From the NCBI GenBank assembly GCA_002269645.1, contig NIVC01000521.1, positions 310,001 to 374,000 of the forward strand: DNA of 64,000 nt, written 5' to 3'. Each line of letters opens with the position of its first letter. The stretch's first letter is position 1. Made by a program: the position numbers and the translations under genes. A model generated the notes under the pieces. The model made no database searches. It was not told where the DNA came from and worked only from the letters and a program-made list of their open reading frames with translations. Of the stretch, positions 8,101-38,100 are shown piece after piece. This DNA comes from Macrostomum lignano. Lineage: Eukaryota.

Positions 8101-8131
<31 letters not shown>

Positions 8132-13023: not shown

Positions 13024-13048
13024 ACACGTGCATGGACGAATCAGATAG

Positions 13049-13552: not shown

Positions 13553-13561
13553 CGAGTATAG

Positions 13562-16033
13562 CGAACAAATACTGCACGTCGCATTGTTCAGCAGCACTTG
13601 ATGATGCAAGTTGGAGCGCGCGACTATTCAGCACAAGAGGCTATGCATCTGGTATTACAGACACCGATGTACAAGGCGTCGCGAGAGTTTGTCTACGTTC
13701 AAACTGGCGAGACTAGAGCGATTGAGAGTCGAGGCGTTTGCAAGAATAGTATTGAAAAGTACGCAAATCGGCCGGCACAATTGGAGAATGAGACAATGTA
13801 TCGATTCTTTTCGGACTATATTCCCCCGATGCGTCAACAAAGACGCGGTGGTGAACAAGTTGCCGTCTACAAGAAGCGACTAGCGGGCAAGGAAGCAGTT
13901 TTGATTGTGAGTCCGTTTTTGCGCTCAACAGAAAGCGACGATAAACGGCGCGAACAATACTATCGGCAGCAGGTACTACTGTGGAGCTGTTGGCGAACCG
14001 AAGAGCAAGCAAAGGGATCGCATGCAAGCTGGCGCGAGGCCTACGAGGCGATGATGCAAACGGAAGCGTGTCAGCTGGTTGTGCGCGATTTGGACGACCT
14101 GCGCAACGATGAAGCCGACGAGGAGGAACGCGAAGCAGTCGCCGATTTGCCAGACATGACTGCCGCGAATGCCGAATCAGTTGCTGGTCCAGCTTATCCG
14201 GAGCGTCAGCAAGAGGATTGGATGGCAGCACTGGGTGCAAAGCATGCGGACATTCAGCTGAATGTCAACAAGAATCCGGAAGACACTCTGCCAGTTGCGC
14301 CAGAAGGTTTCGATTGGAGTGCTGCTTCAGATTGGCAATTTCCGAGTCTGGCAGAGGCAAAGCAGTTTTTAATGACCGAACTGACTAAGCCTGTTAGACG
14401 TGTAGCTGGAATTACCACCGAAGATGGTGCAGGCGCTAATCGTCAAACGATTGACGTTTCACTGCTGAATGAGAGACAGCGGAAGCTCTACGACATGATT
14501 GACAATCAATTGAAGCTTGAACGGCTGGCCGAAAGTGACACTACTAACAATAGTACTGAGTCGGGAAAGATGCCTCCACCACTGCGAGTAATTTTGTATG
14601 GCAGCGCTGGAACAGGCAAGAGTTTTCTGATTGCTGCACTACGAAAATTGATTGGCGAGGACAAGTGCAAAGTAATGGCACCGACTGGTGTGGCTGCGTT
14701 CAACATTGCTGGCGAGACACTGCATTCAGCGTTGAAGTTGAACGTAAAGTTTTCGACTACGGCGTGTACTACTAATGCTGACGGTTCAACGACTTCGGGC
14801 AGCAGCAAGGCATTGTCAGACATGCAATCGGTATGGTCAAACGTGCGCTACATAATCATTGACGAGTTTAGCATGGTTGGCCAAAGGACACTGGCAAAGG
14901 TGCACAACCGTCTGTGCGAACTGTTTCCTGAGGAGAAGCGAGACACGCTTGAAGAAGGATATTTCGGCGGACGGTCAATCATTTTGGTTGGCGATGTGTT
15001 TCAGCTGCCTCCCGTGCAAGACAAACAGCTGTACGTGTTTAACAAGAATGCCAAAGATAATTTGACACCGATTGGCTATCAAGTGTATCAGAGTTTCAAA
15101 ACGGTTGTTTATCTAAACAAGCAGGTGCGTCAAGCAAATGACACAGAGTTTGCCAGCATTCTAGAGTCTCTTCGCGAAGGCAAAGTAACCGAAGCCATTT
15201 GGAAGACTGTAATGGACAAGTGTCAAGTAGCAGCTGCAGACATGCTACCGCTAGATGTTGATGGCAAATGCACGCTATTGTACCACACAAATGAAGATGT
15301 GTCTAATGCAAACTGTGAAGAGCTGCGAAAAATTGTCGATGATAACAATCCGGTGCGGATAATCAATGCAACTTGTACTGGAAGGCAACCGCTGACTGGC
15401 AACAATGCTACTGATAGTAGCAAGCAGAAATCGGAGACAGGCCTAGCCAGGCGACTATTTCTGGCGATTGGAGCCCGCGTGATGTTGACTCGGAACCTAT
15501 CTGTGCAAAATGGCCTGGTGAATGGCTCGGTTGGTACGGTTCGTGGCATCTGCTATGCAAATGGAAAAAAGCCGCCAAATGATTTGCCCGATTGCGTTTG
15601 GGTTGAATTCGAGCGCTACAATGGCCCGGCAATGCAAGCCATGCGGCTGACCAGAGGAGATGGTAGTAGCAGCAGCAGCAGCAGCGAGTGTGCGTCATCA
15701 GTTTCTGTTGTGCCAATTCTGCCAGTGTCGAGCCAGTGGCTTCAGCGAGGCGCCAGCTTGTCGAGACATCAGTTTCCGCTGAGGCTAGCCTGGGCAATCA
15801 CTATTCACAAGTCGCAAGGCCTAACGATTGACAAGGCGTTTGTACAGCTGGGTAAGGGCCGCAAGTCGCCGCCAGCAGGTCTGTACTACACTGCCGTGAG
15901 TAGAGTTCGTGCCTTGTCTGATCTGTTTGTTACCTGTTGCGATTTCGTTAGATTTCAGCGCCTATTTTCTACAGGTGGTATTCTGGCACAGGTAAATGAG
16001 CAGAAGCGTTTATTAGCTTTGTGCGAGAAATGA
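13562..16033 (+). CDS. RepHel protein part 3: PIF1-family SF1B helicase
   Basis: RDYSAQEA motif; Walker A GSAGTGKS 14600-14623; Walker B IIIDEFSM; motif III GDVFQLPPV; VRQ; AWAITIHKSQGLT; YTAVSRV; stop TGA 16031-16033. No AP-endonuclease ORF follows. Confidence 0.95.
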   Translation, partial: RTNTARRIVQQHLMMQVGARDYSAQEAMHLVLQTPMYKASREFVYVQTGETRAIESRGVCKNSIEKYANRPAQLENETMYRFFSDYIPPMRQQRRGGEQVAVYKKRLAGKEAVLIVSPFLRSTESDDKRREQYYRQQVLLWSCWRTEEQAKGSHASWREAYEAMMQTEACQLVVRDLDDLRNDEADEEEREAVADLPDMTAANAESVAGPAYPERQQEDWMAALGAKHADIQLNVNKNPEDTLPVAPEGFDWSAASDWQFPSLAEAKQFLMTELTKPVRRVAGITTEDGAGANRQTIDVSLLNERQRKLYDMIDNQLKLERLAESDTTNNSTESGKMPPPLRVILYGSAGTGKSFLIAALRKLIGEDKCKVMAPTGVAAFNIAGETLHSALKLNVKFSTTACTTNADGSTTSGSSKALSDMQSVWSNVRYIIIDEFSMVGQRTLAKVHNRLCELFPEEKRDTLEEGYFGGRSIILVGDVFQLPPVQDKQLYVFNKNAKDNLTPIGYQVYQSFKTVVYLNKQVRQANDTEFASILESLREGKVTEAIWKTVMDKCQVAAADMLPLDVDGKCTLLYHTNEDVSNANCEELRKIVDDNNPVRIINATCTGRQPLTGNNATDSSKQKSETGLARRLFLAIGARVMLTRNLSVQNGLVNGSVGTVRGICYANGKKPPNDLPDCVWVEFERYNGPAMQAMRLTRGDGSSSSSSSECASSVSVVPILPVSSQWLQRGASLSRHQFPLRLAWAITIHKSQGLTIDKAFVQLGKGRKSPPAGLYYTAVSRVRALSDLFVTCCDFVRFQRLFSTGGILAQVNEQKRLLALCEK

Positions 16034-16329
16034 GCCAGCAGCAATTGGCGTTGTCGATATTATAGTAATGTAGTTATTAGTCACTCGGTTTTGAGTGGGT
16101 GTTACGCGCAGCGAAAATCTAGCGTTGACGTTCTACACAGCAGACATGGCAATATTGCGTTTATTTACATCACTACTAGAAAGTAGTCGCCTACCATGCA
16201 AGGTTAGATTTTTCTGCGCATAATCTTATGCCTATTGTCAACGCTAGTGCATGGTGGGCCAGGATTTTAGAAATTTATATAAGTCGTTGATAATGGAATT
16301 CTATTCCATTGCCTGGCCTCATTAATTAT

Positions 16330-17150
16330 GAGTGTCAAGGCGGTCTACTGTGCATGTGGTTGCTCTTGTTTAGCACAAATTCTCTTGCATTCTGCAGGCT
16401 GTGATAATTTCAGCAGACAGAATAGTGTGTTAAGCATTCGCGCCTTAGAAGGTGGGCAATCGTGAGGTGAAAAGCTTTCCTAGCTGTGATATAGTATACT
16501 GTTCGGATAGATAGGTTTATGCACAGTAGGCAATGCAGTACTGCGGTATATAGCTTAGGAAAGTTGAAATGTGTGCCAAATGATTAAATAATTGCCTCTG
16601 CTCATTAAGTATGGGCAGTATGGCGGTCTACTGTGCACTTTGTTCGCCCTTGTGTGACACACCACTATTGCGTTTTGCCTACTGATAATGTGACACTATT
16701 TAAACGTTATCCAGTTAACAAGATGCGTGTCACTCATGCGCCTTAGAAGGTGGGCGTTCGAATTTCATAAAGTTTATACTAGAATTGCCGACGATAGTGC
16801 ACAGTAGACAATGCAGTACTGCGGAGATACGACTCTCGATTATTTGCCTAGACTCATTAGGTATGAGTACTATGGCGGCTTGCTATGCACGTGGTTGCCT
16901 TCAGGTGGGCAATCGATTTTATGGTTTAAATACCAGAACTTTAATGTCGGCCTTAGTTTGTGCATAGCAGGCACTGCAATATTGCGACGGCCTATGGCCT
17001 AGGTAGGAAACAAATTGCCGTGGCTCATTAGAATGAGTTCATTGGCGGTCTGCTGTGTAGGTGGTTGCAGTTGGGCAGCAGCACAGTATACTGTTGTATT
17101 CAGCATGCAGAAAAGTGTGCTGCCCATTCGCCTTAGGCGTGCAATCGTTA
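16330..17150 (+). repeat. Degenerate ~170-280 bp tandem repeats downstream of the helicase
   Basis: GGCGG(T/C)..CT.TG..G.GGTTGC-like blocks near 16339, 16622, 16875, 17044; CGCCTTAGAAGGTGGGC near 16441 and 16739; GCACAGTAG.CAATGCAGTACTGCGG near 16521 and 16799. Confidence 0.7.
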
Positions 17151-18179
17151 TTAATCTATTGGTGAATTGGCTGCGCGTAACATCGCCCGCAAAATGTGCA
17201 GTAAAGGTCCGTCAAAGTGTGAGCGGCATCGTTTGGCATTGCTTTGATATTGCTTAAAGAAATAATAGTTTGCCTGCCAAACAAAAAGGCTATTTTACTT
17301 TTGAAATATTTATGATTGATAAAATATCCTCTTCTACCGACTAGCTATTCGATGCACGACGCTTTGAGTTTTAGACACAGTCTTTTACGAGCTATTTGAA
17401 AAAATGTTTTAAACAGCTGCTTTATGAACTATTATGAATACAACTGTGTCTAATTATGGACTTATCACGCAAAGTTGCCCTGCCTTATCCAGGCATGCAA
17501 CGTGATCATCTGTTTACTGCAAAGTCGTATCCAATGGCTTCACGAGCCTGCGGGTGTTAAGCCGTTCTTTAGAAGTCAAGAGTCTATAATAGTTTTTATG
17601 TTCTGTGAAACATGTTAAAACTCTTGTCTCTAAATTTTGGCAACAGAATTGGAACGACGCAAGTGTATTTAATGACTTTTGATTAGTTTTAATCCACTAT
17701 TAGACTGATTTCTGATCGAATAGTGCAAGTTTGAAGAAAATCGGTTCACACAATGTCAAGTTAAGCCAAAATTTGTATAGATAGATACATAGGTTGGTAG
17801 ATAGTTCTATTTTTAGTATAACTGATGAATGATGATGATTAGTCATTTGGTTTGTATTTTCTGCTTTCAGATGTCAAATTTTTATTTTTACTTTGGCCGC
17901 GAAGTATAAATTTAAATTTTTACACTACAGTGCCCAACACTGCCAATATGCACGGGACAATAGGGTAATTTTGTCATTTTGACATTTTGTAATTTTGCAA
18001 TTTCCTAACTATATTGAATGGTGCTTCGGCATGCTTGCCATATCGCTCATTAGTCTGCAATCTTCCCAGTTATTCCCGTAAAAATAAATTGAGGATTTTG
18101 CCAGTTTTTGTATTGCTAAAATTATTAATTGTTATAGCTGTTAATAGTATGAAATTTTCCATACTAGAGATGCATGCAA

Positions 18180-18520
18180 AATAGAGATGAGAGCGCAGAG
18201 AGGAGAGATGAGAGATGGGAGATGATTGATAAGAAAATAAAAGTAGAGATGAGAGAGGAGATGAGAGCAGAGAGAAGAGATTAGATAAAGTAGCAAAGAG
18301 GAGAGAGGAGACAGTAGAGAGTCTCAGTCTGGACTATGGCAGTCAATTTTTGCAACCAGGGAAAACATGCTATAAGAGCGCAGAAAGGAGCGATAAGAGA
18401 GTAGAGATGAGAGATTAGAGATGAGATGAGAAATGATAGATAAACGAGCAGATGAGAGCAGAGAGGAGATAGGAGAGATTAGAGATGAGAGAGCAAAGAG
18501 GAGAGAGGGACAGACGAGAG
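18180..18520 (+). repeat. GA-rich low-complexity tract
   Basis: (GAGAT/GAGAG)n-like purine run, with a duplicated GAGTCTCAGTCTGGAC..TGGCAG..GTCAATTTTTGCAA block near 18318 and 18517. Confidence 0.8.
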
Positions 18521-20934
18521 TCTCAGTCTGGACAATGGCAGGCAGTCAATTTTTGCAAACAGGTTAAACAACATGGTTTTTGGGAGGTTAATAGAGGATT
18601 TGGAGAGGATTTGGACGATGGGATATTTACTGGTGACTTTCTGCGTCTAATTATTATTAATCTAAGTATAATGTAAATTTAATTTGAGCTGTTTTTAAAT
18701 GCATATATATATTAGTTACTGTGCTGAGCAGTCAGCTTCGGGAAGAACCTGAAAAAAATTGAATATTGTCTTCTTCTTTCAAATCTTTTATGGACCAACT
18801 GAATTTAGAGATACAGATCGATAGAGTAATTAGCGCTGAATACGGGTTTTGCCATAGACTAATTTGGTCGGAAAAATCAGATCTCGCCGAGACTGAATTG
18901 TGCACTATTTATTTTGGATATTTGGCGTAAGGTATTTAGGATTTGGAAATATTGGTCACTAAGATGTATTTTAGCAGTAAATATATAACTGCAATTTATG
19001 TTTGCTGTATAAATATTTTTTATTATTATATTCAAACAGTCTATGTATAAACTTTGTTTAAATTAAATTAAAAATGTAACCCATTAAGCTTCTTAGTTCT
19101 TAATTTAGGTCAAAGCTGTAAAAGTTACAAACATAATAAACCATCGTCCCACCTTTGAAGACGACAGCGTCTTCATTCACTAGTTGTGGGACGATGAGCC
19201 AGTAAGTAGTATAGAAAAAAAGGCGAGCGAAGCGAGAATTTTTTTCTATACTGCTTACTTTTGCGAAATCGTCCCTGATAAGATGTAACGTGGTTGCACA
19301 CACTAAAAATGACGTTTTTCAACTTTTAAACGCTGCCAATAAAAAACGGTACGACCAATTTACAAACGGTTTTTGCCAAAATGTGTCAAAGACCTAGCGC
19401 TATCGGATGCACAATAGTTGGTTGCCATGGCAATGCGTTTTGGTTGCCATTGCAACCAAAAACTGCGTTTTTTCGACTTTGTCAAAAACTTTGATCTCAA
19501 AAAATAAGGATTGAGAATATGGCAGCGCTTAGCGGGCTGGCTCAGTAAACGCGGGCATTCGAACGCTACAATGATCAGAAATGGATTTTTTTATTGTACT
19601 TTAACGTCTAGGCTAAAAGTACAAAAAACGTGTTTTTTTGAGGTTGAAAAATTGGCATTTTTTTCAACTTTGCCTCACCGCAGCGAAAAGGACGCGCGAT
19701 AGCGCGGCCTTTGAGCTGCCTCATAGCGTCAATAACACCTGGGGCTGTTTGATGCGCTATAGTTTTTAGGGCTAAAATGTACTTTTCACATGGCTGCCTA
19801 TCTGCTGTTTAAAAGTACAAATTTTTAGTGCACTTTTGTGAGGCCTATGGCGTCGAGATGGAAAACTTTATTTTTGCTGTTTTGTATACCAAATAACTCA
19901 AATGGATGTCTTTTAATCGGAAACATCGAGATTTGGCCGATTGGGCCATCAATAACCTGCCCAGGTGCCAAAGAGTGCCTAAAAACGACATTTTCGAAAA
20001 ATTGGGTCACGTTTTAAAAAAGTAGTCCTCAAACTTGAAAAAGTGTTTTATGCTACAGTGTTGAGACTTTAATACGACGTGTCAAACATATGGAAATTTG
20101 TTTTCCTAAATTTTCTAAGCATTTGGACCTACCTGTGCTGAGCAGTGACCCGGAAACCAGGGAAAAAAGAGGCCGGGGGGCACTGCAGAAAATCAGACGT
20201 TGTTAAGGAAATTTTTTTAAAATGGGGCAAAGTTTTTCGAGTATGGCGTCAAATTGTAGCCTATCGGATGCCCTTTTGAATGACATAAAACACTCCTGAA
20301 AAAACCTCTGTTAACAGGTACTTTTTACCTGTTAAGTGAAAAACGGCCCATTCGGGGGTACAAACTTTGAAGTCGAAAAATAAGAATTTTTGCGCACCGA
20401 TTTTTCTGCATTTTCAATATTGTTTAGTCGAATAGCTAAAGTTACACCGGTCATACGCCAATATGGCTGGAAAATTCGTATTTTTGAGAAAATTGGCTCC
20501 GAATTTTTAGAAGGCTATTTTTGGGCAAATTTTGAGCATACTTTTGCTAATAACTCTGCATTGGCAAGGCCTAGAGACTCAATTTTGGTGTCTAAAAACA
20601 GCACTATGGATGCACTGTGCAACTAAATTAGTTTTGAAAACTGATTCTTAAGTTAATAGGTCTTAATACCTGTTTGAATACCTGTCAGAACAGGTGAAAA
20701 TGCACAATTTGGCGCCTAGGAGGCGTAAAATTTGTTGACATACTTTAAAAATGCATTAGATGAATGCGCCTTGATGTTATCTCTGTAACGACATGCAACT
20801 CGCATTTTTAGATGAAGGCGCTGCGATGCAGCGAGCAGAAATGTATGAAAAAGCAGCAAAAATCGTAAAAGTGGCTACCATAGGGAATATTCGATATAAA
20901 GGGCGTGCACTGTAGAGCTTCGCTTAAGCAAGAG

Positions 20935-21012
20935 ATGGATCGGGGCCGAAGGCAGTTGCTTTGTAAATGGCCTAAACACGGGTTCGAATCCCAAGTGGGC
21001 CAAGTTTTTTTT
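20935..21012 (+). promoter_or_regulatory. tRNA-like Pol III cassette (B box + oligo-T) in the element arm; also at ~1445-1520, ~3225-3305, ~26595-26670
   Basis: GGTTCGAATC(C) at 1492, 3274, 20981, 26640, each followed ~12-15 nt later by a T run; A-box-like TGGCGCGGTGG in the 3.2-kb copy; TATAAA upstream. Does not fold into a full cloverleaf by eye. Confidence 0.5.
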
Positions 21013-21410
21013 TTAAATTTAATTTTTTTAGCAGGAACGGATTTATTAGTATTTTCAATTCTCTTTCACTTGAATATAATTTAATATTGATTGTTTAATT
21101 TTCATTTCCTTCTATACCTTATTAAAGAGTAAGAGTGAAGCTGAAAGTGCGGCACAGATGATTTGTTAGTGCAGAAAAAATATTACGATACATATCGGCA
21201 AGTATCATGTGTTGCGCGGTCGCCAAAGGCTTACAAGCAGTTTTAGCATGCTAAAAAGATGTGTTAGAGGTGAGAAGAGTTGCGGAGGGGTGGGGTGGGG
21301 GAGCGGGGGTGTGGGGGCGGCAGCCCCCACGTTACGCAAACCCCACAACAACAACCACCCTCCCCAACAACAACGCGCGGGAGGGGTGGGGGAGCGGGGG
21401 TGTGGGGGCG

Positions 21411-24400
21411 GCCAGCCCCCCACTATACCACTAGAAAAACTAATGCCAGGGGCGTGGGGGCGGCCAGCCCCCACTATACCACTAGACTAACTAATGCCAG
21501 GGGCGTGGGGGGCGGCTAGCCCCCACTATACCACTATACCACTAGACTAACTAATGCCAGGGGCGTGGGGGGCGGCCAGCCCCCCACTATACCACTAGAA
21601 AAACTAATGCCAGGGGCGTGGGGGGCGGCTAGCCCCCTACTATACCACAAGACTAACTAATGCCAGGGGCGTGGGGGCGGCCAGCCCCCACTATACCACT
21701 AGACTAACTAATGCCAGGGGCGTGGGGGGCGGCCAGCCCCCCACTATACCACTAGACTAACTAATGCCAGGGGCGTGGGGGGCGGCCAGCCCCCCACTAT
21801 ACCACTAGACTAACTAATGCCAGGGGCGTGGGGGGCGGCAAGCCCCCCCCCACTATACGAGCGTACCACTAGAAGAACTAATGCCAGGGGCGTGGGGGCG
21901 GCTAGCCCCCACTATACCACTAGACTAACTAATGCCAGGGGTGTGGGGGCGGCCAGCCCCCACTATACCACTAGACTAACTAATGCCAGGGGCGTGGGGG
22001 GCGGCCAGCCCCCCACTATACCACTAGACTAACTAATGCCAGGGGCGTGGGGGGCGGCAAGCCCCCACTATACGAGCGTACCACTAGACTAACTAATGCC
22101 AGGGGCGTGGGGGCGGCCAGCCCCCACTATACCACTAGACTAACTAATGCCAGGGGCGTGGGGGGCGGCCAGCCCCCCACTATACCACTAGACTAACTAA
22201 TGCCAGGGGCGTGGGGGCGGCCAGCCCCCACTACACCACTAGACTAACTAATGCCAGGGGCGTGGGGGCGGCCAGCCCCCCACTATACCACTAGACTAAC
22301 TAATGCCAGGGGCGTGGGGGGCGGCAAGCCCCCCCCACTATACGAGCGTACCACTAGAAGAACTAATGCCAGGGGCGTGGGGGGCGGCTAGCCCCCACTA
22401 TACCACTAGACTAACTAATGCCAGGGGCGTGGGGGGCGGCCAGCCCCCACTATACCACTAGACTAACTAATGCCAGGGGCGTGGGGGGCGGCCAGCCCCC
22501 CACTATACCACTAGACTAACTAATGCCAGGGGCGTGGGGGCGGCCAGCCCCCCACTACACCACTAGACTAACTAATGCCAGGGGCGTGGGGGCGGCCAGC
22601 CCCCCACTATACCACTAGACTAACTAATGCCAGGGGCGTGGGGGCGGCCAGCCCCCACTATACCACTAGACTAACTAATGCCAGGGGCGTGGGGGCGGCA
22701 AGCCCCCCACTATACGAGCGTACCACTAGAAGAACTAATGCCAGGGGCGTGGGGGGCGGCTAGCCCCCACTATACCACTAGACTAACTAATGCCAGGGGT
22801 GTGGGGGCGGCCAGCCCCCCACTATACCACTAGACTAACTAATGCCAGGGGCGTGGGGGCGGCCAGCCCCCCACTATACCACTAGACTAACTAATGCCAG
22901 GGGCGTGGGGGGCGGCAGCCCCCACTATACGACGTACCACTAGAAGAACTAATGCCAGGGGCGTGGGGGCGGCTAGCCCCCACTATACCACTAGACTAAC
23001 TAATGCCAGGGGTGTGGGGGCGGCCAGCCCCCACTATACCACTAGACTAACTAATGCCAGGGGCGTGGGGGGCGGCAGCCCCCCACTATACCACTAGACT
23101 AACTAATGCCAGGGGCGTGGGGGGCGGCAAGCCCCCACTATACGAGCGTACCACTAGACTAACTAATGCCAGGGGCGTGGGGGCGGCCAGCCCCCACTAT
23201 ACCACTAGACTAACTAATGCCAGGGGCGTGGGGGCGGCCAGCCCCCCACTATACCACTAGACTAACTAATGCCAGGGGCGTGGGGGCGGCCAGCCCCCCA
23301 CTACACCACTAGACTAACTAATGCCAGGGGCGTGGGGGCGGCCAGCCCCCCACTATACCACTAGACTAACTAATGCCAGGGGCGTGGGGGCGGCAAGCCC
23401 CCCCCACTATACGAGCGTACCACTAGAAGAACTAATGCCAGGGGCGTGGGGGCGGCTAGCCCCCCACTATACCACTAGACTAACTAATGCCAGGGGCGTG
23501 GGGGCGGCCAGCCCCCACTATACCACTAGACTAACTAATGCCAGGGGCGTGGGGGCGGCCAGCCCCCCACTATACCACTAGACTAACTAATGCCAGGGGC
23601 GTGGGGGCGGCCAGCCCCCACTATACCACTAGACTAACTAATGCCAGGGCGTGGGGGCGGCCAGCCCCCACTATACCACTAGACTAACTAATGCCAGGGG
23701 CGTGGGGGGCGGCCAGCCCCCCACTATACCACTAGACTAACTAATGCCAGGGGCGTGGGGGCGGCCAGCCCCCCACTATACCACTAGACTAACTAATGCC
23801 AGGGGCGTGGGGGGCGGCCAGCCCCCACTATACCACTAGACTAACTAATGCCAGGGGCGTGGGGGCGGCCAGCCCCCCACTATACCACTAGACTAACTAA
23901 TGCCAGGGGCATGGGGGGCGGCCAGCCCCCCACTATACCACTAGACTAACTAATGCCAGGGGCGTGGGGGGCGGCCAGCCCCCCACTACACCACTAGACT
24001 AACTAATGCCAGGGGCGTGGGGGCGGCCAGCCCCCCACTATACCACTAGACTAACTAATGCCAGGGGCGTGGGGGCGGCAAGCCCCCCCCCCACTATACG
24101 AGCGTACCACTAGAAGAACTAATGCCAGGGGCGTGGGGGGCGGCTAGCCCCCCACTATACCACTAGACTAACTAATGCCAGGGGCGTGGGGGGCGGCCAG
24201 CCCCCCACTATACCACTAGACTAACTAATGCCAGGGGCGTGGGGGGCGGCCAGCCCCCCACTATACCACTAGACTAACTAATGCCAGGGGCGTGGGGGCG
24301 GCCAGCCCCCCACTATACCACTAGACTAACTAATGCCAGGGCGTGGGGGGCGGCCAGCCCCCACTATACCACTAGACTAACTAATGCCAGGGGCGTGGGG

Positions 24401-24760
24401 GGCGGCCAGCCCCCCACTATACCACTAGACTAACTAATGCCAGGGGCGTGGGGGCGGCCAGCCCCCCACTATACCACTAGACTAACTAATGCCAGGGGCG
24501 TGGGGGCGGCCAGCCCCCACTATACCACTAGACTAACTAATGCCAGGGGCGTGGGGGGCGGCCAGCCCCCCACTATACCACTAGACTAACTAATGCCAGG
24601 GGCGTGGGGGCGGCGAGCCCCCCACTATACCACTAGACTAACTAATGCCAGGGGCGTGGGGGGCGGCCAGCCCCCCACTATACCACTAGACTAACTAATG
24701 CCAGGGGCGTGGGGCGGCCAGCCCCCCCACTAGACCACTAGACTAACTAATGCCAGGGGC
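21411..24760 (+). repeat. 51-53 bp satellite array A (~64 copies)
   Basis: Unit CTATACCACTAGACTAACTAATGCCAGGGGCGTGGGGGCGGCCAGCCCCCA with variable G/C run lengths; copy number estimated from length/period. Confidence 0.97.
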
Positions 24761-24844
24761 ATATGTCATAGCCATAAAAGGATAAAAACACAATATATAA
24801 ACCATCGTCCCACCTTTGAAGACGACAGCGTCTTCATTCACTAG

Positions 24845-27800
24845 TTGTGGGACGATGAGCCAGTAAGTAGTATAGAAAAAAAGGCGAGCGAAGCGAGAAT
24901 TTTTTTCTATACTGCTTACTTTTGCGAAATCGTCCCTGATAAGATGTAACGTGGTTGCACACACTAAAAATGACGTTTTTCAACTTTTAAACGCTGCCAA
25001 TAAAAAACGGTACGACCAATTTACAAACGGTTTTTGCCAAAATGTGTCAAAGACCTAGCGCTATCGGATGCACAATAGTTGGTTGCCATGGCAATGCGTT
25101 TTGGTTGCCATGGCAACCAAAAACTGCGTTTTTTCGACTTTGTCAAAAACTTTGATCTCAAAAAATAAGGATTGAGAATATGGCAGCGCTTAGCGGGCTG
25201 GCTCAGTAAACGCGGGCATTCGAACGCTACAATGATCAGAAATGGATTTTTTTATTGTACTTTAACGTCTAGGCTAAAAGTACAAAAAACGTGTTTTTTG
25301 AGGTCGAAAAATTGGCATTTTTTCCAACTTTGCCTCACCGCAGCGAAAAGGACGCGCGATAGCGCGGCCTTTGAGCTGCCTCATAGCGTCAATAACACCT
25401 GGGGCTGTTTGATGCGCTATAGTTTTTAGGGCTAAAATGTACTTTTCACATGGCTGCCTATCTGCACTTTAAAAGTACAAATTTTTAGTGCACTTTTGTG
25501 AGGCCTATCTCGTCGAGATTAAAAACTTTATTTTTTAATATTTCTACACCAAATTACTCAAATAGATGTCTTCTATTCGGAAACATCGAGATTTGGCTTA
25601 TTGGGCCATCAATAACCTGCCCAGGTGCCAAAGAGTGCCTAAAAACGACATTTTCAAAAAATTGGGTCACGTTTTAAAAAAGTAGTCCTCAAACTTGAAA
25701 AAGTGTTTTATGCTACAGTGGTGAGACTTTAACACGATGTGTCAAACATATGGAAATTTGTTTTCCTAAATTTTCTAAGCATTTGGACCTACCTGTGCTG
25801 AGCAGTGACCCGAAAACCAGGGAAAAAAGAGGCCGGGGGGCACTGCAGAAAATCAGACGTTGTTAAGGAAATTTTTTTAAAATGGGGCAAAGTTTTTCGA
25901 GTATGGCGTCAAATTGTAGCCATCGGATGCCCTTTTGAATGACATAAGACACTCCTGAAAAAACCCCTGTTAACAGGTACTTTTTACCTGTTAAGTGAAA
26001 AACGGCCCATTTTGGGGTACAAACTTTGAAGTGGAAAAATAAGAAATTTTGCGCACCGATTTTTCTGCATTTTCAATATTGTTTAGTCGAATAGATGAAG
26101 TTACACCGGTCATACGCCAATATGGCTGGAAAATTCGTATTTTTGAGAAAATTGGCTCCGAATTTTGAGAAGGCTATTTTTGGGCAAATTTTGAGCATAC
26201 TTTTGCTAATAACTCTGCATTGGCAAGGCCTAGAGACTCAATTTTGGTGTCTAAAAACAGCACTATGGATGCACTGTGCAACTAAATTAGTTTTGAAAAC
26301 TGATTCTTAAGTTAATAGGTCTTAATACCTGTTTGAATACCTGTCAGAACAGGTGAAAATGCACAATTTGGCGCCTAGGAGGCGTAAAATTTGTTGACAT
26401 ACTTTAAAAATGCATTAGATGAATGCGCCTTGATGTTATCTCTGTAACGACATGCGACTCGCATTTTTAGATGAAGGCGCTGCGATGCAGCGAGCAGAAA
26501 TGTATGAAAAAGCAGCAAAAATCGTAAAAGTGGCTACCATAGGGAATATTCGATATAAACGGCGTGCACTGTAGAGCTTCGCTTAAGTAAGAGATGGATC
26601 GGGGCCGAAGGCAGTTGCTTTGTAAATGGCCTAAACACGGGTTCGAATCCCAAGTGGGCCAAGTTTTTTTTATATTTAATTTTTTAGCAGGAACGGATTT
26701 ATTAGTATTTTCAATTCTCTTTCACTTGAATATAATTTAATATTGATTGTTTAATTTTCCTTTCCTTCTATACCTTATTAAAGAGTAAGAGTGAAGCTGA
26801 AAGTGCGGCACAGATGATTTGTTAGTGCAGAAAGAATATTACGATACATATCGGCAAGTATCATGTGTTGCGCGGTCGCCAAAGGCTTACAAGCAGTTTT
26901 AGCATGCTAAAAAGATGTGTTAGAGGTGGGAAAAGTTGCGGAGGGGTGGGGTGGGGGAGCGGGGGTGTGGGGGCGGCAGCCCCCACGTTACGCAAACCCC
27001 ACAACAACAACCACCCTCCCCAACAACAATGTGCGGGAGGGGTGGGGGAGCGGGGGTGTGGGGGCGGCAGCCCCCACGTTACGCAAACCCCACAACAACA
27101 ACCACCCTCCCAACAACAACGCGCGGGAGGGGTGGGGGAGCGGGGGTGTGGGGGCGGCAGCCCCCACGTTACGCAAACCCCACAACAACAACCACCCTCC
27201 CCAACAACAACGCGCGGGAGGGGTGGGGGAGCGGGGGTGTGGGGGCGGCCAGCCCTCCACTATACCACTAGACAAACTAATGCCAGGGGCGTGGGGGCGG
27301 CCAACTCCCCACTATACCACTAGAGAAACTAATGCCAGGGGTGTGGGGGGCGGCCAGCCCCCCACTATACCACTAGACTAACTAATGCCAGTGGCGTGGG
27401 GGCGGCCAGCCCCCCACTATACCACTAGACTAACTAATGCCAGGGGCGTGGGGGCGGCCAGCCCCCCACTATACCACTAGAGAAACTAATGCCAGGGGCG
27501 TGGGGGGCGGCCAGCCCCCCACTATACCACTAGACTAATAAATGCCAGGGGCGTGGGGGGCGGCCAGCCCCCTACTATACCACTAGACTAACTAATGCCA
27601 GGGGCGTGGGGGGCGGCCAGCCCCCACTATACCACTAGACTAACTAATGCCAGGGGCGTGGGGGCGGCCAGCCCCCACTATACCACTAGACTAACTAATG
27701 CCAGGGGCGTGGGGGTGGCCAGCCCCCACTATACCACTAGACTAACTAATGCCAGGGGCGTGGGGGGCGGCAAGCCCCCACTATACCACTTAGACTAACT

Positions 27801-30800
27801 AATGCCAGGGGCGTGGGGGCGGCCAGCCCCCACTATACCACTAGACTAACTAATGCCAGGGGCGTGGGGGCGGCCAGCCCCCACTATACCACTAGACTAA
27901 CTAATGCCAGGGGCGTGGGGGCGGCCAGCCCCCTACTATACCACTAGACTAACTAATGCCAGGTGTGGGGGGCGGCCAGCCCCCACTATACCACTATACC
28001 ACTAGACTAACTAATGCCAGGGGCGTGGGGGGCGGCCAGCCCCCACTATACCACTTAGACTAACTAATGCCAGGGGCGTGGGGGCGGCGAGCCCCCCACT
28101 ATACCACTAGACTAATAAATGCCAGGGGCGTGGGGGCGGCCAGCCCCCACTATACCACTAGACTAACTAATGCCAGGGGCGTGGGGGTGGCCAGCCCCCA
28201 CTATACCACTAGACTAACTAATGCCAGGGGCGTGGGGGGCGGCCAGCCCCCCACTATACCACTTAGACTAACTAATGCCAGGGGCGTGGGGGCGGCCAGC
28301 CCCCACTATACCACTAGACTAACTAATGCCAGGGGCGTGGGGGGCGGCCAGCCCCCACTATACCACTAGAAACTAATGCCAGGGGCGTGGGGGCGGCCAG
28401 CCCCCACTATACCACTTAGACTAACTAATGCCAGGGGCGTGGGGGCGGCCAGCCCCCCACTATACCACTAGACTAACTAATGCCAGGGCGTGGGGGCGGC
28501 CAGCCCCCCACTATACCACTAGACTAACTAATGCCAGGGGCGTGGGGGGCGGCCAGCCCCCCACTATACCACTAGACTAACTAATGCCAGGGGCGTGGGG
28601 GCCAGCCCCCCACTATACCACTAGACTAACTAATGCCAGGGGCGTGGGGGGCGGCCAGCCCCCACTATACCACTAGACTAACTAATGCCAGGGGCGTGGG
28701 GGCGGCCAGCCCCCCACTATACCACTAGACTAACTAATGCCAGGGGCGTGGGGGCGGCTAGCCCCCCACTATACCACTAGACTAATAAATGCCAGGGGCG
28801 TGGGGGCGGCCAGCCCCCTACTATACCACTAGACTAACTAATGCCAGGGGCGTGGGGGCGGCCAGCCCCCACTATACCACTAGACTAACTAATGCCAGGG
28901 GCGTGGGGGCGGCTAGCCCCCCACTATACCACTATACCACTAGACTAACTAATGCCAGGGGCGTGGGGGCGGCCAGCCCCCACTATACCACTAGACTAAC
29001 TAATGCCAGGGGCGTGGGGGCGGCAGCCCCCCTATACCACTTAGACTAACTAATGCCAGGGGCGTGGGGGCGGCCAGCCCCCCACTATACCACTAGACTA
29101 ACTAATGCCAGGGGCGTGGGGGGCGGCCAGCCCCCCACTATACCACTAGACTAACTAATGCCAGGGGCGTGGGGGCGGCCAGCCCCCACTATACCACTAG
29201 ACTAACTAATGCCAGGGGCGTGGGGGGCGGCCAGCCCCCCACTATACCACTAGACTAACTAATGCCAGGGGCGTGGGGGCGGCAAGCCCCCACTATACCA
29301 CTTAGACTAACTAATGCCAGGGGCGTGGGGGCGGCCAGCCCCCCACTATACCACTAGACTAACTAATGCCAGGGGCGTGGGGGCGGCCAGCCCCCCACTA
29401 TACCACTAGACTAACTAATGCCAGGGGCGTGGGGGCGGCCAGCCCCCTACTATACCACTAGACTAACTAATGCCAGGTGTGTGGGGGGCGGCCAGCCCCC
29501 ACTATACCACTATACCACTAGACTAACTAATGCCAGGGCGTGGGGGCGGCCAGCCCCCCACTATACCACTTAGACTAACTAATGCCAGGGGCGTGGGGGC
29601 GGCGAGCCCCCCACTATACCACTAGACTAATAAATGCCAGGGGCGTGGGGGGCGGCCAGCCCCCCACTATACCACTAGACTAACTAATGCCAGGGGCGTG
29701 GGGGTGGCCAGCCCCCCACTATACCACTAGACTAACTAATGCCAGGGGCGTGGGGGCGGCCAGCCCCCCACTATACCACTTAGACTAACTAATGCCAGGG
29801 GCGTGGGGGCGGCCAGCCCCCACTATACCACTAGACTAACTAATGCCAGGGGCGTGGGGGGCGGCCAGCCCCCCACTATACCACTAGACTAACTAATGCC
29901 AGGGGCGTGGGGGGGCCAGCCCCCCACTATACCACTTAGACTAACTAATGCCAGGGGCGTGGGGGCGGCCAGCCCCCCACTATACCACTAGACTAACTAA
30001 TGCCAGGGGCGTGGGGGGCGGCCAGCCCCCACTATACCACTAGACTAACTAATGCCAGGGGAGTGGGGGGCGGCCAGCCCCCACTATACCACTAGACTAA
30101 CTAATGCCAGGGGCGTGGGGGTGGCCAGCCCCCTACTATACCACTAGACTAACTAATGCCAGGGGCGTGGGGATGGCCAGCCCCCACTATACCACTAGAC
30201 TAACTAATGCCAGGGGCGTGGGGGCGGCCAGCCCCCCACTATACCACTAGACTAACTAATGCCAGGGGCGTGGGGGCGGCCAGCCCCCCACTATACCACT
30301 AGACTAACTAATGCCAGGGGCGTGGGGGCGGCTAGCCCCCCACTATACCACTATACCACTAGACTAACTAATGCCAGGGGCGTGGGGGGCGGCCAGCCCC
30401 CCACTATACCACTAGACTAACTAATGCCAGGGGCGTGGGGGGCGGCCAGCCCCCACTATACCACTAGACTAACTAATGCCAGGGGCGTGGGGGCGGCCAG
30501 CCCCCCACTATACCACTAGACTAACTAATGCCAGGGGCGTGGGGGCGGCCAGCCACCCACTATACCACTAGACTAACTAATGCCAGGGGCGTGGGGGTGG
30601 CCAGCCCCCCACTATACCACTTAGACTAACTAATGCCAGGGGCGTGGGGGGCGGCGAGCCCCCCACTATACCACTAGACTAATAAATGCCAGGGGCGTGG
30701 GGGCGGCCAGCCCCCCACTATACCACTAGACTAACAAATGCCAGGGGCGTGGGGGGCGGCCAGCCCCCACTTTACCACTAGACTAACTAATGCCAGGGGC

Positions 30801-31026
30801 GTGGGGGGCGGCCAGCCCCCACTATACCACTAGACTAACTAATGCCAGGGGCGTGGGGGGCGGCCAGTCCCCCACTATACCACTAGACTAACTAATGCCA
30901 GGAGCGTGGGGGGCTTTTTAGCTCTCAATTTAGGTTAAATAAATAGATGTCATAGCCATAAACAATAATGGACACAATATAAACCATCGTCCCACCTTTG
31001 AAGACGACAGCGTCTTCATTCACTAG
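24845..31026 (+). mobile_element. Non-autonomous rolling-circle element unit B (6182 bp)
   Basis: Starts TT+GTGGGACGATG (24845-24857); 5' arm nearly identical to unit A. Ends with CATCGTCCCAC 30985-30995, hairpin 30999-31018, CTAG 31023-31026, followed by host T at 31027 and unrelated AT-rich sequence. Confidence 0.9.
27249..30913 (+). repeat. 51-53 bp satellite array B (~70 copies)
   Basis: Same unit as array A with a different set of variants; copy number estimated from length/period. Confidence 0.97.
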
Positions 31027-31900
31027 TGTATAGTCTAAACTATTTTAGCTAGCTGACTAAGATGCAAAATTATACTTTTAGTTGCCTTCAAACTTGCCTT
31101 GCTCTATCTTTTTTTTCTTTACTATGCTTTTCCCTATCATACTATGCTGTTTTACTGCTAAATTGCACTATACCATTCCATACTACTAGATATACTATAC
31201 TATATTGTATTGTTACTAGGCTGCTATATGCTAGATATATCAAAACTGCCTATGTATATACACTGCAATTGTGCTTAAATCTTATTTGTGCTTTTAAATT
31301 AATGTTAAAATATCTTGTTCAATGACTAGGAACTAAGACTTTTATCTCCCTTAGCAAAAATGATCTATAGTGCCTAATCATATTAATATTATTGATTTTG
31401 GATATTGAAGTTCTGGCTTATGATCCCATAAAAAATACATCAACTATTCTAACTATGTTAAGCTATTCATGGCCACACTAGTTTGAAACTAAAATAGTGT
31501 CAAAGCTTATTGCCCAAAATAGTTATATAGATTGATGATATTAGCCCCCTTAGTATGTTATCTATGGCATAAGTTTTTTATATTCTATTTATAAAGGCTC
31601 AATAATTTAGTTTTATTGTCAACTCAAAAGTAAAAAAAGGCTAATGAACTAGCATAATTCTAACTAATATATCACTTTTAAATAAATTAATTCAGTATAA
31701 TAATTTTCAATAACTTATACAATTGTCCCTCATACATGCCCAACCTCAAAATTTCACCCATCCAGTGCGACTTAGTTTTGTCCAGATTTGCAACTTACCT
31801 ATGCACTACCACACTGAAGGACCAGGGGGGGGGACACGCCTCATGCCTGCTTGTGCTTATTGAAAAATGGAAGTACCTCATTTTTCCCCTTCTGACTATA

Positions 31901-33191
31901 TGAAGGCTGAGCAATAAGTTTCCGGATGTGCCCAGACAGAAATAGTTAGAGAGAAAAAAACAGCTACATCTTTTCAAAGTACTCTCCAGCAGATTCGATG
32001 CAAATTTTCATGCGCTCAAACCACTTGCTGAAGCAGCTGGACCAATCTGAAGCAGGCACCTCCTCCACATGCCGGATGAAGGCCTCCACTGCAGCTTCTG
32101 GTGATCCATAGCGGATTCCACGCATCTTGCGCTTGATTTGTGGAAACACAAAAAAGTCGCAGGGGGCCAGGTCGGGGCTGTAGGGTGGATGACCGAGCTC
32201 TTGAATGCGCTGTCCGGCCAGGAACTCCGCCACCTGTCGAGCCTTGTGGACCGGGGCGTTGTTATGATGAAGAAGGATGCCCCAAGCTCGAGTCCTTGGG
32301 CGACGCCTGGAGATAGCGCTCAGCACTCCAGTCACCAGTGACTGTGCCCTGCTGCACAGTGGAACTGTGGCCAGATGACCAGTTTTCGCCACAAAAACAG
32401 CCACCATCTGCTTCGCCACGCTGCACTCTCGCCGAAGCTTGGATGGTGGGGTGCTGCCAACTGGAGTCCACTGGGCCGACTGCTGCTTAGTCTCCGGGTC
32501 GAAACTATACTATAGATCCAGGACTCGTCACCACTGACGATATCCCAGACCGAGTTTGAGCTGCCTCCATTGAATTTGTCAAGCATGGTGCGGCACCAGG
32601 TCACCCGAGCCTCCTTCTGCTCCGGAGCCAGCTGATGAGGCACCCAGCGTGCAGAAATCTTGCTCAGGTTGAGCTGTGAATGCAGGATCGTCCTGATGGA
32701 TCCTGGTGAGATACCCATCTCTGCCTCTATTTGGGCCACAGTCACTTGGGCATCATCCTCAACCATGGCCCAGACAGCAGCAACATTATCCTCAGTTGCT
32801 GCGGAGACAGACCGGCCGCTGCGCTCTTCATCATCCAGACTCTGCCTGCCGCGTCGAAATTCGGCAAACCAGTCAAAATCGGTGGATCTAGAAGGTTCTT
32901 CATCCACAAAAGCTCCTTGCAATCGCTCAAGACTTTTTTTGCTGCCGCAAACCACTTTTAAAATCGTAATAAATCATTGCTCTAAAATGACTCCTATTGA
33001 GCTCCATTGTGAATTTGATAGATAGGGTGGGTATGCTAGCTTGGTTTGGGTGCTGCACTGGCTATATATCACCAGTGTGTCTGAAACTATACAAACATTG
33101 TACTTATATAATGTACTTGACACCTATGGTGTCAGATTTTGTCAGCCGCCTCTCAACTATGCACACCCAGAAACTTATTGCTCAGCCCTCG
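31901..33191 (-). mobile_element. Mariner (Tc1/mariner) transposon, 1291 bp, inactive
   Basis: 31-bp TIRs (27/31 identical) 31901-31931 / 33161-33191, TA duplications at 31899-31900 and 33192-33193. Confidence 0.95.
31964..33007 (-). pseudogene. Mariner transposase pseudogene
   Basis: ATG at 33007 (MELNRSHFRAMIYYDF); WVPHQL, GDESWIY and HPPYSPDLAPCDF motifs; frameshifts near 32940 and 32510; second catalytic Asp changed (HHNNAP instead of HHDNAP). Confidence 0.92.
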
Positions 33192-35175: not shown

Positions 35176-38100
35176 ATGGCCAAAGCGCACCAGCTTGACG
35201 CAAAGCTGCGCACTCAAGACGTTGCCCAGGGCGACGCGGCCAACTTTGCCGATTTGCTACTGTCCGAGCCTGTGCTGGCCGGCCTGTCCGAGGCTGGCTA
35301 CCGGACACCGTCGCCAATCCAGCTGAAGGCGATCCCGCTGGGCCGGTGCGGCCTGGACCTGGTAGTGCAGTCCAAGGCGGGCACCGGCAAGACCTGCGTG
35401 TTCGCCGTGTTGGCTCTGGAATCGCTGGCGCCAGATTTTGCTAATAACCACCGCCAAGGCGAAGTTGTCGCTGGCGTGCGAGTTCTGGCTCTGTCGCCCA
35501 CTCGCGAAGTGGCTCTGCAGAGCCGGCGGGCTATCGAGACCATCGGGCAGCGTCTGGCTGGACTGCGCTGCGGCCTGTTCATCGGCGGCCTCGGCGCCGG
35601 GGTCAAGGAGGCTGAGGCTGAGGCGGCGGCCTGTCAGGTTGCTGTGGGCACCCCCGGCCGCGTACGGCAGCTCATTGAAGCCGGCTGTCTGAAGACTGAC
35701 AGAGTCCGCATGCTGGTGCTCGACGAGGCGGATGCACTGCTTAATGAGTCTTTTCAGCAGGATATTAAGTGAGAGTTGCTTATTTGCTACTTGTTAGTAG
35801 GCTAGCATTTCTTGATAGGGTAGCTTGATTCATGGGTTTTGATGTAGCATACTTATGAGAATCCGCCTCCCCTCCTTTTTGGGGAGGTAGAATGCCTCCA
35901 AAACGATTCAAAGATGGAGAATTCCCTTTCAGATAAGATGAAGATCGAAGAATCCCCCATATTCCCAGACGAAGAAATCCCCCAGATTCCCAGATGAGGA
36001 ATCCCCCAGATTCCCAGGTAAAAAAATCCCTCAGATTTCCAGATGAAGAATCTCCCCAGATTCCTAGATGAAGAAATCCCCTACATTCTTAGATGAAGAA
36101 TCATCCCAGCTTCCCAGATGAAGAAATCCCCCAGATTCTACAGATGAATCGTTTCAGATTCCCAGGTCAAGAAAACCCCAGATGCCCAGATGAAGACCCC
36201 CCAGATTCCCTGATGAAGAATCTCCCAGATTTCCAAATGAAGAAATCCTCCACATTCCCAGAAGAAATCCCCAGATTCCCAGATGGAAAATGGCGCCAGA
36301 TTTCCAAAACAAGAAGACTCCCAGATTCCCAGATTCTCAAATGAAGGATCTCCCAGATTCCCAGATTCTCAAATGAAGAATCTCCCAGATTCCCAGATTC
36401 TCAAATGAAGGATCTCCCAGATTCCCAGATTCTCAAATGAAGGATCTCCCAGATTCCCAGATTCTCAAATGAAGAATCTCCCAGATTCCCAGATTCTCAA
36501 ATGAAGAATCTCCCAGATTCCCAGATTCTCAAATGAAGAATCTCCCAGATTCCCAGATTCTCAAATGAAGAATCTCCCAGATTCCCAGATTCTCAAATGA
36601 AGGATCTCCCAGATTCCCAGATTCTCAAATGAAGAATCTCCCAGATTCCCAGATTCTCAAATGAAGAATCTCCCAGATTCCCAGATTCTCAAATGAAGGA
36701 TCTCCCAGATTCCCAGATTCTCAAATGAAGGATCTCCCAGATTCCCAGATTCTCAAATGAAGAATCTCCCAGATTCCCAAATGGAGAATCCATCCCACTT
36801 TTCGAAGACTGCATTCCCATCCTCTTCCCACTCCATTTTTTGCCAACCCCCACTCCCCCTGTCCTCAGCTGCATCTACTGGAAGCTGCCGCAGAACAAGC
36901 AGGTGCTGGCCCTGTCGGCCACCTACCCGGACTCCATGGCCCAGCAGCTGTCGATGTACATGCGCGATCCAACGCTGGTCCGTCTAAGCGGCGGCCAACT
37001 GCTTGGCGTTCGACTCTACTGGCGCTCCGTGCCGGACAGCCACCTGCCTAATCTTGTGCTCGAACGGAAAGCTCGAATACTTGGCGACTTATTAGCCCAG
37101 GTGCAGTTCGGCCAGTGCCTGGTGTTCTCCAACTATCAGGAGCGGGCTAGGGAGCTGTGCCAGCGGCTTGAGGCAGCCGGCTGGCCGGTGGCCTATCTGG
37201 CTGGCCGGCTGCAGCAGTCCGAGCGAATCGGGGCCTACGATCGGCTGCGCGACTTCCGCTGCCGAGTTCTGGTTGCCACCGACGTGGCCGCCAGAGGCGT
37301 CGATGCGGAGAATGTCGATCTGGTGGTTAATTTGGATCTGCCAAGGTAAAATACAAGTGCTTGTGTAATATCTGACTCACTTTTCTATTGTACAATAGTT
37401 TAAGGCAAAGATCCATATTCATACTACTTACGTCGTAATTAAGTCGCTTAAATTCAAACCCCAAAAATGATCTTTTCAAAACTGTTTTGAAACTGTAATA
37501 AAATCTGGAGAGTTCTCCATTTTAGAATCTATTTAAAGAGGATTCTCCATCTGTTAATCTAGGGGGAATTCTTCATCTGGAAATCTAGGCGATTCTCCAT
37601 CTGCGAATCTAGGGGGGATTCTCCATCTGGGAATCTTGGGGGATTCTCCATCTGGGAATCTAGGGGGATTCTCCCTCTGGGAATCTAGGGGTTTCTCCCT
37701 CTGGGAATCTAGGGGGTTTCTCCATCTGGGAATCTTAGGGGGTTTCTCCATCTGGGAATCTAGGGGGTTTCTCCATCTGGGAATCTAGGGGGTTTCTCCA
37801 TCTGGGAATCTAGGGGGGATTCTCCATCTGGGAATCTAGTGAGATTATTCATCAGAAAAACTAGGGAGATTATCTATCTGAAAATCTAGGAGGATTCTTC
37901 CTAGGAGGGATTCTCCATCTGGGAATCCAAGGGTGATTCTCCATCTGGGAAGCTTAGGGTGATTCTCCATCTGGGAATCTTAGGGTGATTCTCCATCTGG
38001 GAATCTAGGGTGATTCTCCATCTGGGAATCTTAGGGTGATTCTCCATCTGGGAATCTAGGGTGATTCTCCATCTGGGAATCTATTGGGATTCTGCAATAG

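Follow-up and report, generated by a model that had tools for sequence, protein, structure and literature searches.

The window analysed here is a stretch of 64,000 nt of contig NIVC01000521.1 from Macrostomum lignano (assembly GCA_002269645.1), and positions follow its own numbering, except for those given on contigs L001 to L012. A self-comparison of the window resolved three collinear units arranged head to tail, which we assign, with a probability of about 0.7, to three Helitron2-type (HLE2, endonuclease-less) elements of a single M. lignano family that targets the sequence CTAG, stacked by successive insertion at the ends of resident copies. L001, which represents contig NIVC01000521.1, holds the window exactly (L001:1517-24539 corresponds to window 1-23023 at 100% identity, L001:1517 being window position 1), and the window's Rep open reading frame (ORF) is 98% identical to the M. 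lignano protein P0001, encoded on the same contig. The units and their ends are the following:

1-19183, plus strand, 5' part outside the window: unit 1, autonomous-type, with its real start at L001:323
19142-19183, plus strand: right end of unit 1, with the 3' inverted repeat (19142-19152), a hairpin (19156-19175), TTCA and CTAG (19180-19183)
19184-24844, plus strand: unit 2, non-autonomous, 5,661 bp, from self-comparison and sequence reading
19184-19275, plus strand: left end of unit 2, with TT, the 5' inverted repeat (19186-19196) and a stem (19201-19221 with 19239-19259)
24803-24844, plus strand: right end of unit 2
24845-31026, plus strand: unit 3, non-autonomous, 6,182 bp, from self-comparison and sequence reading
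30985-31026, plus strand: right end of unit 3 and of the array, followed by the flank TGTATAG

The unit boundaries are marked by the 11-mer CATCGTCCCAC, found on the plus strand at 19142, 24803 and 30985 and as its reverse complement at 19186 and 24847 (five matches against 0.44 expected, a number reached in none of 100 shuffles). Three identical copies of a 3' cassette, CATCGTCCCAC-CTT-TGAAGACG-ACAG-CGTCTTCA-TTCA-CTAG, terminate at 19183, 24844 and 31026; directly after the first two come TTGTGGGACGATGAGCC and a 21-bp stem containing one G-T pair, and after the last one TGTATAGTC and unrelated DNA. An earlier reading of the same stretch (the original prediction) had reported this cassette three times, with two gap-free fusions to a TT-subterminal inverted repeat plus stem-loop and a last copy followed by T and unrelated DNA, all of which is borne out. 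It had also placed the corresponding 5' end ~1.2 kb or more before position 1, and this terminus, TTGTGGGACGATG, is indeed present at L001:323, 1,194 bp upstream of the window, the full length of unit 1 being 20,377 bp.

The 5' inverted repeat is the 11-bp GTGGGACGATG, located 2 bp from the 5' end (TT-GTGGGACGATG), with its reverse complement near the 3' end. The 3' repeat is followed, after 3 nt, by a hairpin with an 8-bp stem, and 31 nt separate this repeat from the end of the element. Single-stranded DNA folding gave a compound hairpin for the first 107 nt (-22.8 kcal/mol, z = -7.1 relative to shuffles), where GGGACGAT of the 5' inverted repeat (19188-19195) pairs with ATCGTCCC (19268-19275), ~75 nt downstream, around the 21-bp stem. 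The 8-bp hairpin of the 3' cassette, folded in the same way, has z = -5.2 relative to shuffles.

Coding capacity was found in unit 1, for which the following parts of an OTU-RepHel gene were identified:

8485-8595, plus strand: probable first exon of the OTU-RepHel gene (residues 1-37 of the M. lignano protein P0118, 100% identity)
9580-13023, plus strand: ORF with an OTU protease, DUF6570 and a Helitron_like_N Rep with the HUH motif (HVH), ending at a 1-bp frameshift relative to P0118
13061-16033, plus strand: remaining Rep domain (YLIKY tyrosines) and a Pif1-type helicase, with a frameshifted patch at 13486-13560 and stops at 13550 and 13559

Pfam matches in the unit 1 ORFs are to OTU, DUF6570 (E = 4.6e-20), Helitron_like_N and PIF1, the last being carried by the ORF at 13598-16033, and the protein has the HUH motif RGSPHVHGCVW and the YLIKY tyrosine pair. 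Unit 1 is 96-100% identical to P0118 (1,920 aa), except in the repeat-bearing segment 9592-10707, where identity falls to 90%. The frame is broken in two regions, by 1-bp indels near 13021 and 13060 and by the patch at 13486-13560 with its two stops, which may reflect real decay or long-read indel errors. No Exo_endo_phos domain and no SET or TIR accessory domains were detected in the Pfam search of the window ORFs; the endonuclease part of the homologue P0023 has no match in the window, to which only its helicase part aligns, and downstream of the helicase there is no ORF above 80 aa in unit 1. Helraiser (7lcc), the solved canonical Helitron transposase, matches weakly and in the helicase only (E = 8e-9). 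The original prediction of a metazoan Helitron-like rolling-circle family with subterminal inverted repeats and a 3' hairpin is supported by the host, M. lignano, by the Pfam domains and by the ends.

Three further observations follow. The low-complexity linker of the OTU-RepHel ORF contains a 315-bp tandem duplication (two copies, 90% identical, 10390-11025). In the 3' non-coding region of unit 1, positions 18411-18624 belong to a ~215-bp dispersed repeat that is also present, with 91.6% identity, on an unrelated contig (L005:1421-1632). Among other proteins, P0004, of 1,739 aa and combining DUF6570, Rep and Pif1 domains, comes from an 11.6-kb contig assigned to a Candidatus Thiodiazotropha metagenome-assembled genome; this DNA probably belongs to the bivalve host and was binned together with its symbiont.

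By definition (PMC3627910), Helitron2 elements carry one inverted repeat at 2 bp from the 5' terminus, which takes part in a 5' hairpin, and a second one at the 3' side, immediately before a hairpin and some 20-30 bp from the terminus; HLE2 elements are described likewise (PMC11417382). The window family has the terminal inverted repeat, the 5' hairpin with the repeat, and the 3' repeat before the hairpin, with 31 nt up to the terminus, so that what the original prediction took for a hybrid end structure matches the published definition (PMC3627910, PMC11417382). Judged from sequence, the ends are canonical for Helitron2/HLE2 except for the last four bases. As in the endonuclease-less Helitron2/HLE2 elements (Bao & Jurka 2013, PMC3627910; HELIANO, PMC11417382), asymmetric inverted repeats, a 5' hairpin and a 5' T are combined with a DUF6570 RepHel protein without endonuclease and with non-autonomous derivatives. 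DUF6570 has been reported to be specific to the HLE2 (Helitron2/Helentron) clade (PMC11417382), and the putative HLE2 assignment rests on this domain, in a protein without endonuclease, and on the end architecture. However, Helitron2/HLE2 elements end in a T-run and their published targets are TTTT^T/C or T^T, whereas the window family ends in CTAG, and CTAG precedes every 5' end observed for this family and for the sister family described below. Helentrons and HINE/DINE-1 (Thomas et al. 2014, PMC4067079; for oyster satellites, PMC7492417) share with the window family the subterminal inverted repeats, an inverted repeat beside the 5' one, the 3' stem-loop, the OTU domain, and non-autonomous copies made up of tandem repeats for at least half of their length. 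In contrast, Helentrons have a C-terminal AP endonuclease, terminal T-runs and insertion at the TT dinucleotide, none of which is found here, the endonuclease included.

The insertion site was examined with the help of a sister M. lignano family (P0003, P0119 and P0120), ~37% identical in the N-terminal part and with copies on four contigs, so that the evidence consists of five 5' flanks from two families and of one filled site that could be compared with its empty counterparts. The ends of the sister family are arranged alike, with TT-AGGTCGAAGTGC before a long stem-loop at the 5' side and GCACTTCGACCT-GCT-AAGGTG-GCA-CACCTT-CAAT-CTAG at the 3' side; its 5' hairpin (z = -8.4) involves the 5' repeat as in the window family, and the loop of the 5' stem-loop, GCGAGCGAAGCGAG, is common to both. 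The 5' flank of the array reads ...ATCAACTAG/TTGTGGG (the slash marking the boundary; also given as ...AAATATCAACTAG/TTGTGGG), with CTAG at L001:319-322 and hence a G as the base before the element. CTAG likewise precedes the sister-family 5' ends at L004:11730, L005:6346 and L007:6872 and a 14-nt remnant at L006:4075, while the sequence farther upstream differs each time. The copy at L007:6872-20030 (13,159 bp) is a solo insertion, and 370 bp past its 3' end there is a small gene with nearly identical paralogues on two further contigs, both empty at the site. These homeologous empty sites, on L008 and L010, contain a single CTAGTT (both read ...gaaatgcaCTAGTTGGTCTAC..., also given as ...gaaatgcaCTAGTTGGTCTACTG...), and the filled site on L007 reads ...gaaatgcaCTAG/TTAGG...CAATCTAG/TTGGTCTACTG....

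This comparison fixes the boundaries to within the shared CTAGTT: the target has one CTAG(T), and the element brings the second. The left flank, right end and target read as the same sequence because the element ends in its own CTAG: on the left, the CTAG of the flank meets the TT of the element, and on the right, the CTAG of the element meets the T of the flank. Insertion at CTAG^T of an element TT...CTAG is the one parse fitting every case in both families, and CTAGT^N with an element T...CTAGT is possibly equivalent, with a 1-nt ambiguity; in the latter, T^T is possible for the sister family and T^G for the window array, and CTAG is needed in either case. The T^T (or TTTT^T/C) insertion of HLE2 is thus not what we observe, given that the five 5' flanks end in CTAG and the empty site is CTAGTT. 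The A^T target of the original prediction is contradicted by the G of CTAG before the array, by the CTAG before the four sister-family 5' ends and by the empty site. Its expectation of no target-site duplication holds formally, but CTAG(T) stands on both sides of each insertion, and the element ends in the CTAG that it targets.

It could be argued that staggered cleavage produced the two flanking CTAG(T) as a real target-site duplication, as CTAGTT flanks the filled site twice and occurs once in the empty site, and variable target-site duplications were reported for some Helitron2 derivatives (PMC3627910). We consider this very improbable. The element codes for a Rep/helicase but for no enzyme of the DDE type, the sequence of the repeat does not vary, which indicates sequence recognition rather than a fixed stagger, and a 3'-terminal CTAG is a classical Helitron terminus (CTRR). 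Moreover, known HUH transposons insert beside a fixed short sequence without duplicating it. The bacterial HUH elements IS608 and IS91, for instance, insert 3' of a fixed tetranucleotide that equals their left cleavage site, with no duplication, although they are prokaryotic and differ from the window family in Rep architecture and in having no fused helicase.

Other readings of the flanks were set aside. Considering CTAG as the first four bases of the element instead of as target is equivalent in sequence, since CTAG(T) is then required in the other side of the target. The CTAG before unit 1 was not taken for the remnant of a degenerate 3' end, as L001:1-322 has no inverted repeat or hairpin, even at two mismatches, and a DDE-type mechanism was discarded for want of such a gene in the element. 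In distant relatives from ENA metagenome assemblies, L011 (P0010) and L012 (P0013), with helicases 36-37% identical and present as single copies, a scan for inverted repeat plus hairpin gave no convincing termini; a 15-nt inverted pair in L011 (6112/15321), followed by CTAG, was rejected for having neither a hairpin nor a left CTAG.

Several side observations were made on the sister-family contigs. L006:2447-4076 is a 32-bp satellite of 51 copies, with CTAGTT in every unit, which ends in ...CTAG/TTAGGTCGAAGTGC, the latter being the 14-nt remnant of the sister-family 5' end; it could result from insertion into a target-rich satellite followed by deletion, or be the satellite of a derivative element. 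The unit of a 99-bp satellite (L006:6-1870, 19 copies) holds TTGTGGGACGA, which corresponds to the first 11 nt of the 5' end of the window family, a match that may be due to chance. In L006, the long 5' hairpin of the sister family is adjoined by an inverted internal segment (L006:4112-5143 versus L007:9009-10040), and at L005:13891 a coding region runs into the middle part of the hairpin, restarting the element, so this hairpin looks like a rearrangement hotspot.

With the ends and target in hand, the family can be compared with proto-Helentron, described as 5'-TT...CTAG-3', inserted at A^T and with a Helitron-like structure (PMC4067079). The original prediction regarded the window family as a true metazoan member of this lineage, in agreement with the 5'-TT and 3'-CTAG termini of proto-Helentron-Pi from Phytophthora infestans (PMC4067079) and with its HLE2-type protein, reported to have DUF6570 and no endonuclease; short terminal inverted repeats are also shared, on re-analysis (PMC11417382). 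Nevertheless, this affiliation is in our view quite unlikely. Proto-Helentron-Pi is reported to insert between A and T and has genes with SET and TIR domains, whereas in the window family every observed 5' end comes after a G, that of CTAG, and neither accessory domain was retrieved. The stem-loops, located downstream of the left repeat and after the right one, are those of canonical HLE2 and not the 'reverse' arrangement of the re-analysed proto-Helentron, nothing like which was found by HELIANO in 404 other species (PMC11417382), and no Phytophthora protein was among the homologues that we retrieved. As far as the predicted features go, the window family shares with proto-Helentron only the TT/CTAG end bases and the absence of an endonuclease. 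Canonical Helitrons (Helitron1/HLE1, e.g. Helraiser) also have a hairpin followed by a 3' CTRR (CTAG) and a rolling-circle Rep plus Pif1, and tandem arrays of them are known in bat, maize, rice and Arabidopsis, but they start with 5'-TC, lack terminal inverted repeats and a 5' hairpin, and target A^T, in contrast with the 5'-TT, 11-bp repeats and CTAG^T found here, and their protein is only distantly related.

The three units have ~2.2 kb of 5' region in common. Unit 1 is ~91-92% identical to units 2 and 3 over the first 1.35 kb and ~82% beyond, and at the 3' side the homology of units 2 and 3 with unit 1 is limited to the last 45-50 bp. Units 2 and 3 are non-coding, and their remainder is a 52-bp satellite, whose G-rich palindromic core recurs in 91-bp repeats of units 1 and 3:

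21397-24760, plus strand: 52-bp satellite array of 63 copies, in unit 2, from tandem-repeat comparison
27234-30912, plus strand: 52-bp satellite array of 70 copies, in unit 3, from tandem-repeat comparison
1801-2513, plus strand: 91-bp G-rich tandem repeat, 7.9 copies, in the 5' region of unit 1
26944-27260, plus strand: 91-bp repeat, 3.5 copies, in unit 3

Self-comparison and coding content therefore sustain the description, already present in the original prediction, of a head-to-tail trimer with a RepHel-coding member and two derivatives. Satellite-filled non-autonomous derivatives of this sort are typical of Helentron relatives (PMC4067079, PMC7492417). An internal duplication of ~880 bp in the 5' region, present in unit 1 (L001:323-1516 plus window 1-1050) and in a partner copy on L002 (L002:8088-10627) and missing from units 2 and 3, marks an 'autonomous-type' 5' subfamily.

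The junction between units, CTAG/TTGTGGGACGATG, also occurs with base precision on two other contigs. At L002:8088 it joins an autonomous variant, which has 7 kb of different sequence downstream of the helicase, to a unit-1-like 5' region, and at L003:11212 this variant is followed by a unit-3-like element. Thus, a 3' end directly precedes four of the five 5' ends observed for the window family. CTAGT sites are frequent in the window (30 on the plus strand and 164 on the minus strand), so tetranucleotide specificity alone cannot explain this frequency of end-to-end junctions. In the first 1.88 kb of unit 3, identity is 99.7% to its partner on L003, 97.6% to unit 2 and ~92% to unit 1. Neighbouring units are thus not sisters, whereas a concatemer made from a single circular template should have identical neighbours, and repeated insertion at resident 3' ends is favoured. 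The original prediction had left both origins open for the gap-free junctions; insertion at the family's own end fits better, and the concatemer is disfavoured by neighbours that are not each other's closest relatives. As a separate observation, the 52-bp satellite units (21397-24760 and 27234-30912) carry CTAGT on the minus strand, which amounts to ~134 potential targets in inverse orientation, none of them occupied in the window.

Rolling-circle concatemers, arising by repeated rounds on a circle or by bypass of termination and integrated as a multimer, are the usual explanation for tandem Helitron arrays (PMC4067079, PMC12001565, 10.1101/2024.11.21.624632), and CTAG/TT is the junction expected of a joined-end circle; units 2 and 3 are also alike in structure and 97.6% identical. 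As the origin of the array as a whole we find this unlikely: unit 1, with its 20.4 kb and its lower identities, cannot share a template with the other two, unit 3 resembles a copy from a different contig more than it does its neighbour, the autonomous variant is joined to two different partners on L002 and L003, and the CTAG before unit 1 is not needed by such a model. A concatemer origin for the junction between units 2 and 3 alone is possible, and inter-array recombination is a less likely source of the mixed neighbours.

In a different scenario, the junction would have arisen once and been spread by unequal crossing-over, segmental duplication or gene conversion, without any end targeting. 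The 2.2-kb 5' regions and the satellite arrays offer long homology for this, the genome is partly duplicated, and satellite copy number differs between units (63 versus 70). Yet there are at least four left/right combinations with the same precise junction, the ~45-50 bp of 3' homology between autonomous and non-autonomous copies is a poor substrate for swapping left neighbours, and the CTAG before solo sister-family 5' ends and the empty site would be left unexplained, making this a very unlikely account. Least probable of all, with hardly any weight, are assembly artefacts, by repeat collapse or chimeric joining: L002 and L003 do begin inside an element and the RepHel frame has the 1-bp indels typical of uncorrected long-read assemblies, but the same base-precise junction is seen four times on three contigs with different neighbours, and random misjoins would miss the biological termini.

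Some points nonetheless weigh against stacking by CTAG-targeted insertion. Recombination between arrays could also shuffle neighbours, and M. lignano has duplicated subgenomes, meaning that the other loci could be old duplicates, although the neighbours on L002 and L003 differ from those in the window. The junction evidence comes from one PacBio-based assembly, and the sample of ends is small (three contigs for the window family and four for the sister family) and biased to copies near annotated genes. The exact cut is ambiguous within CTAGT(T), and a genuine 5-bp target duplication would give identical sequences. Finally, the sole empty site belongs to the sister family, and no empty site was found for the array: ten ORF translations from the downstream flank (31-43 kb) are not in the protein collection, and a search with the DDX20-like ORF of this flank returned no M. 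lignano protein.

If insertion at resident ends is the correct explanation, the HUH Rep would nick at CTAG^T, a single-stranded circle would be the intermediate, and each inserted copy would recreate the target on its two sides. With its inverted repeat and hairpin, the 3' end of a resident copy would probably be the preferred substrate of the transposase, and new copies would then land exactly on old ends, building mixed head-to-tail arrays with the junction CTAG/TT. Only tentatively do we propose, beyond this, a flatworm HLE2 lineage whose Rep might use CTAG^T at the left flank, at the right terminus and in the target, with resident 3' ends acting as docking sites and arrays growing by end-targeted insertion.

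Parallels exist in fungi. FoHeli1 and FoHeli2 of Fusarium oxysporum (PMC5148889) have Helitron2-type ends, hairpins at both termini and joined-end products, and their target TNAT^T resembles their own 3' end, ATTTT; a target resembling the own end is thus shared with the window family, although the sequences differ. A three-copy tandem in Metarhizium acridum was given the same two explanations considered here, insertion at the own end or concatemer formation, and no mixed arrays of autonomous and satellite-bearing elements were described in these fungal hosts (PMC5148889). Tandem arrays of Helitron or Helitron2 elements, again with these two explanations, are known from bat, silkworm, maize, rice, Arabidopsis, Xenopus and Metarhizium (PMC4067079, PMC5148889, PMC12001565, 10.1101/2024.11.21.624632), and the novelty that the original prediction attached to the tandem arrangement was overstated, in view of published head-to-tail Helitron arrays (PMC5148889, PMC4067079, PMC12001565).

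Downstream of the array, two overlapping ORFs on the minus strand (31964-32766) resemble, by eye only, remnants of a mariner/Tc1-type transposase. Farther on lies a DDX20-like DEAD-box helicase gene (35176-35772 and 36936-37349), 50-53% identical to annelid, mollusc and insect proteins, with 25-bp and 32-bp tandem repeats at 35.9-36.9 kb between its parts.

These elements are not a new kind of mobile element, and the CTAG terminal and target sequence is a modest twist on Helitron2. In the searchable literature, Repbase not covered, we found no HLE2 family inserting at CTAG, and this target appears to be undescribed there so far; the main text of the HELIANO study names no flatworms (PMC11417382). 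Annotation tools and manual curation apply a T-T insertion rule to HLE2 (PMC11417382), so families with CTAG as both insertion site and end would be given wrong bounds or overlooked. The genome of M. lignano, a model flatworm, is rich in repeats and partly duplicated, and families with known ends are an aid to its annotation. The presence of the same short sequence at the left flank, right terminus and target provides a simple and testable model of site choice by an HUH Rep, and offers an explanation for the end-to-end piling of such elements. Such stacking bears on how transposons seed tandem arrays and satellites, an active question for the Helentron derivatives of oyster and Drosophila, and, if our interpretation is true, it would represent a defined path by which a transposon becomes a higher-order tandem array. 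The lineage would in addition connect Helitron2 architecture to the CTRR terminus known from classical Helitrons, and might reflect an ancestral state shared with proto-Helentron.

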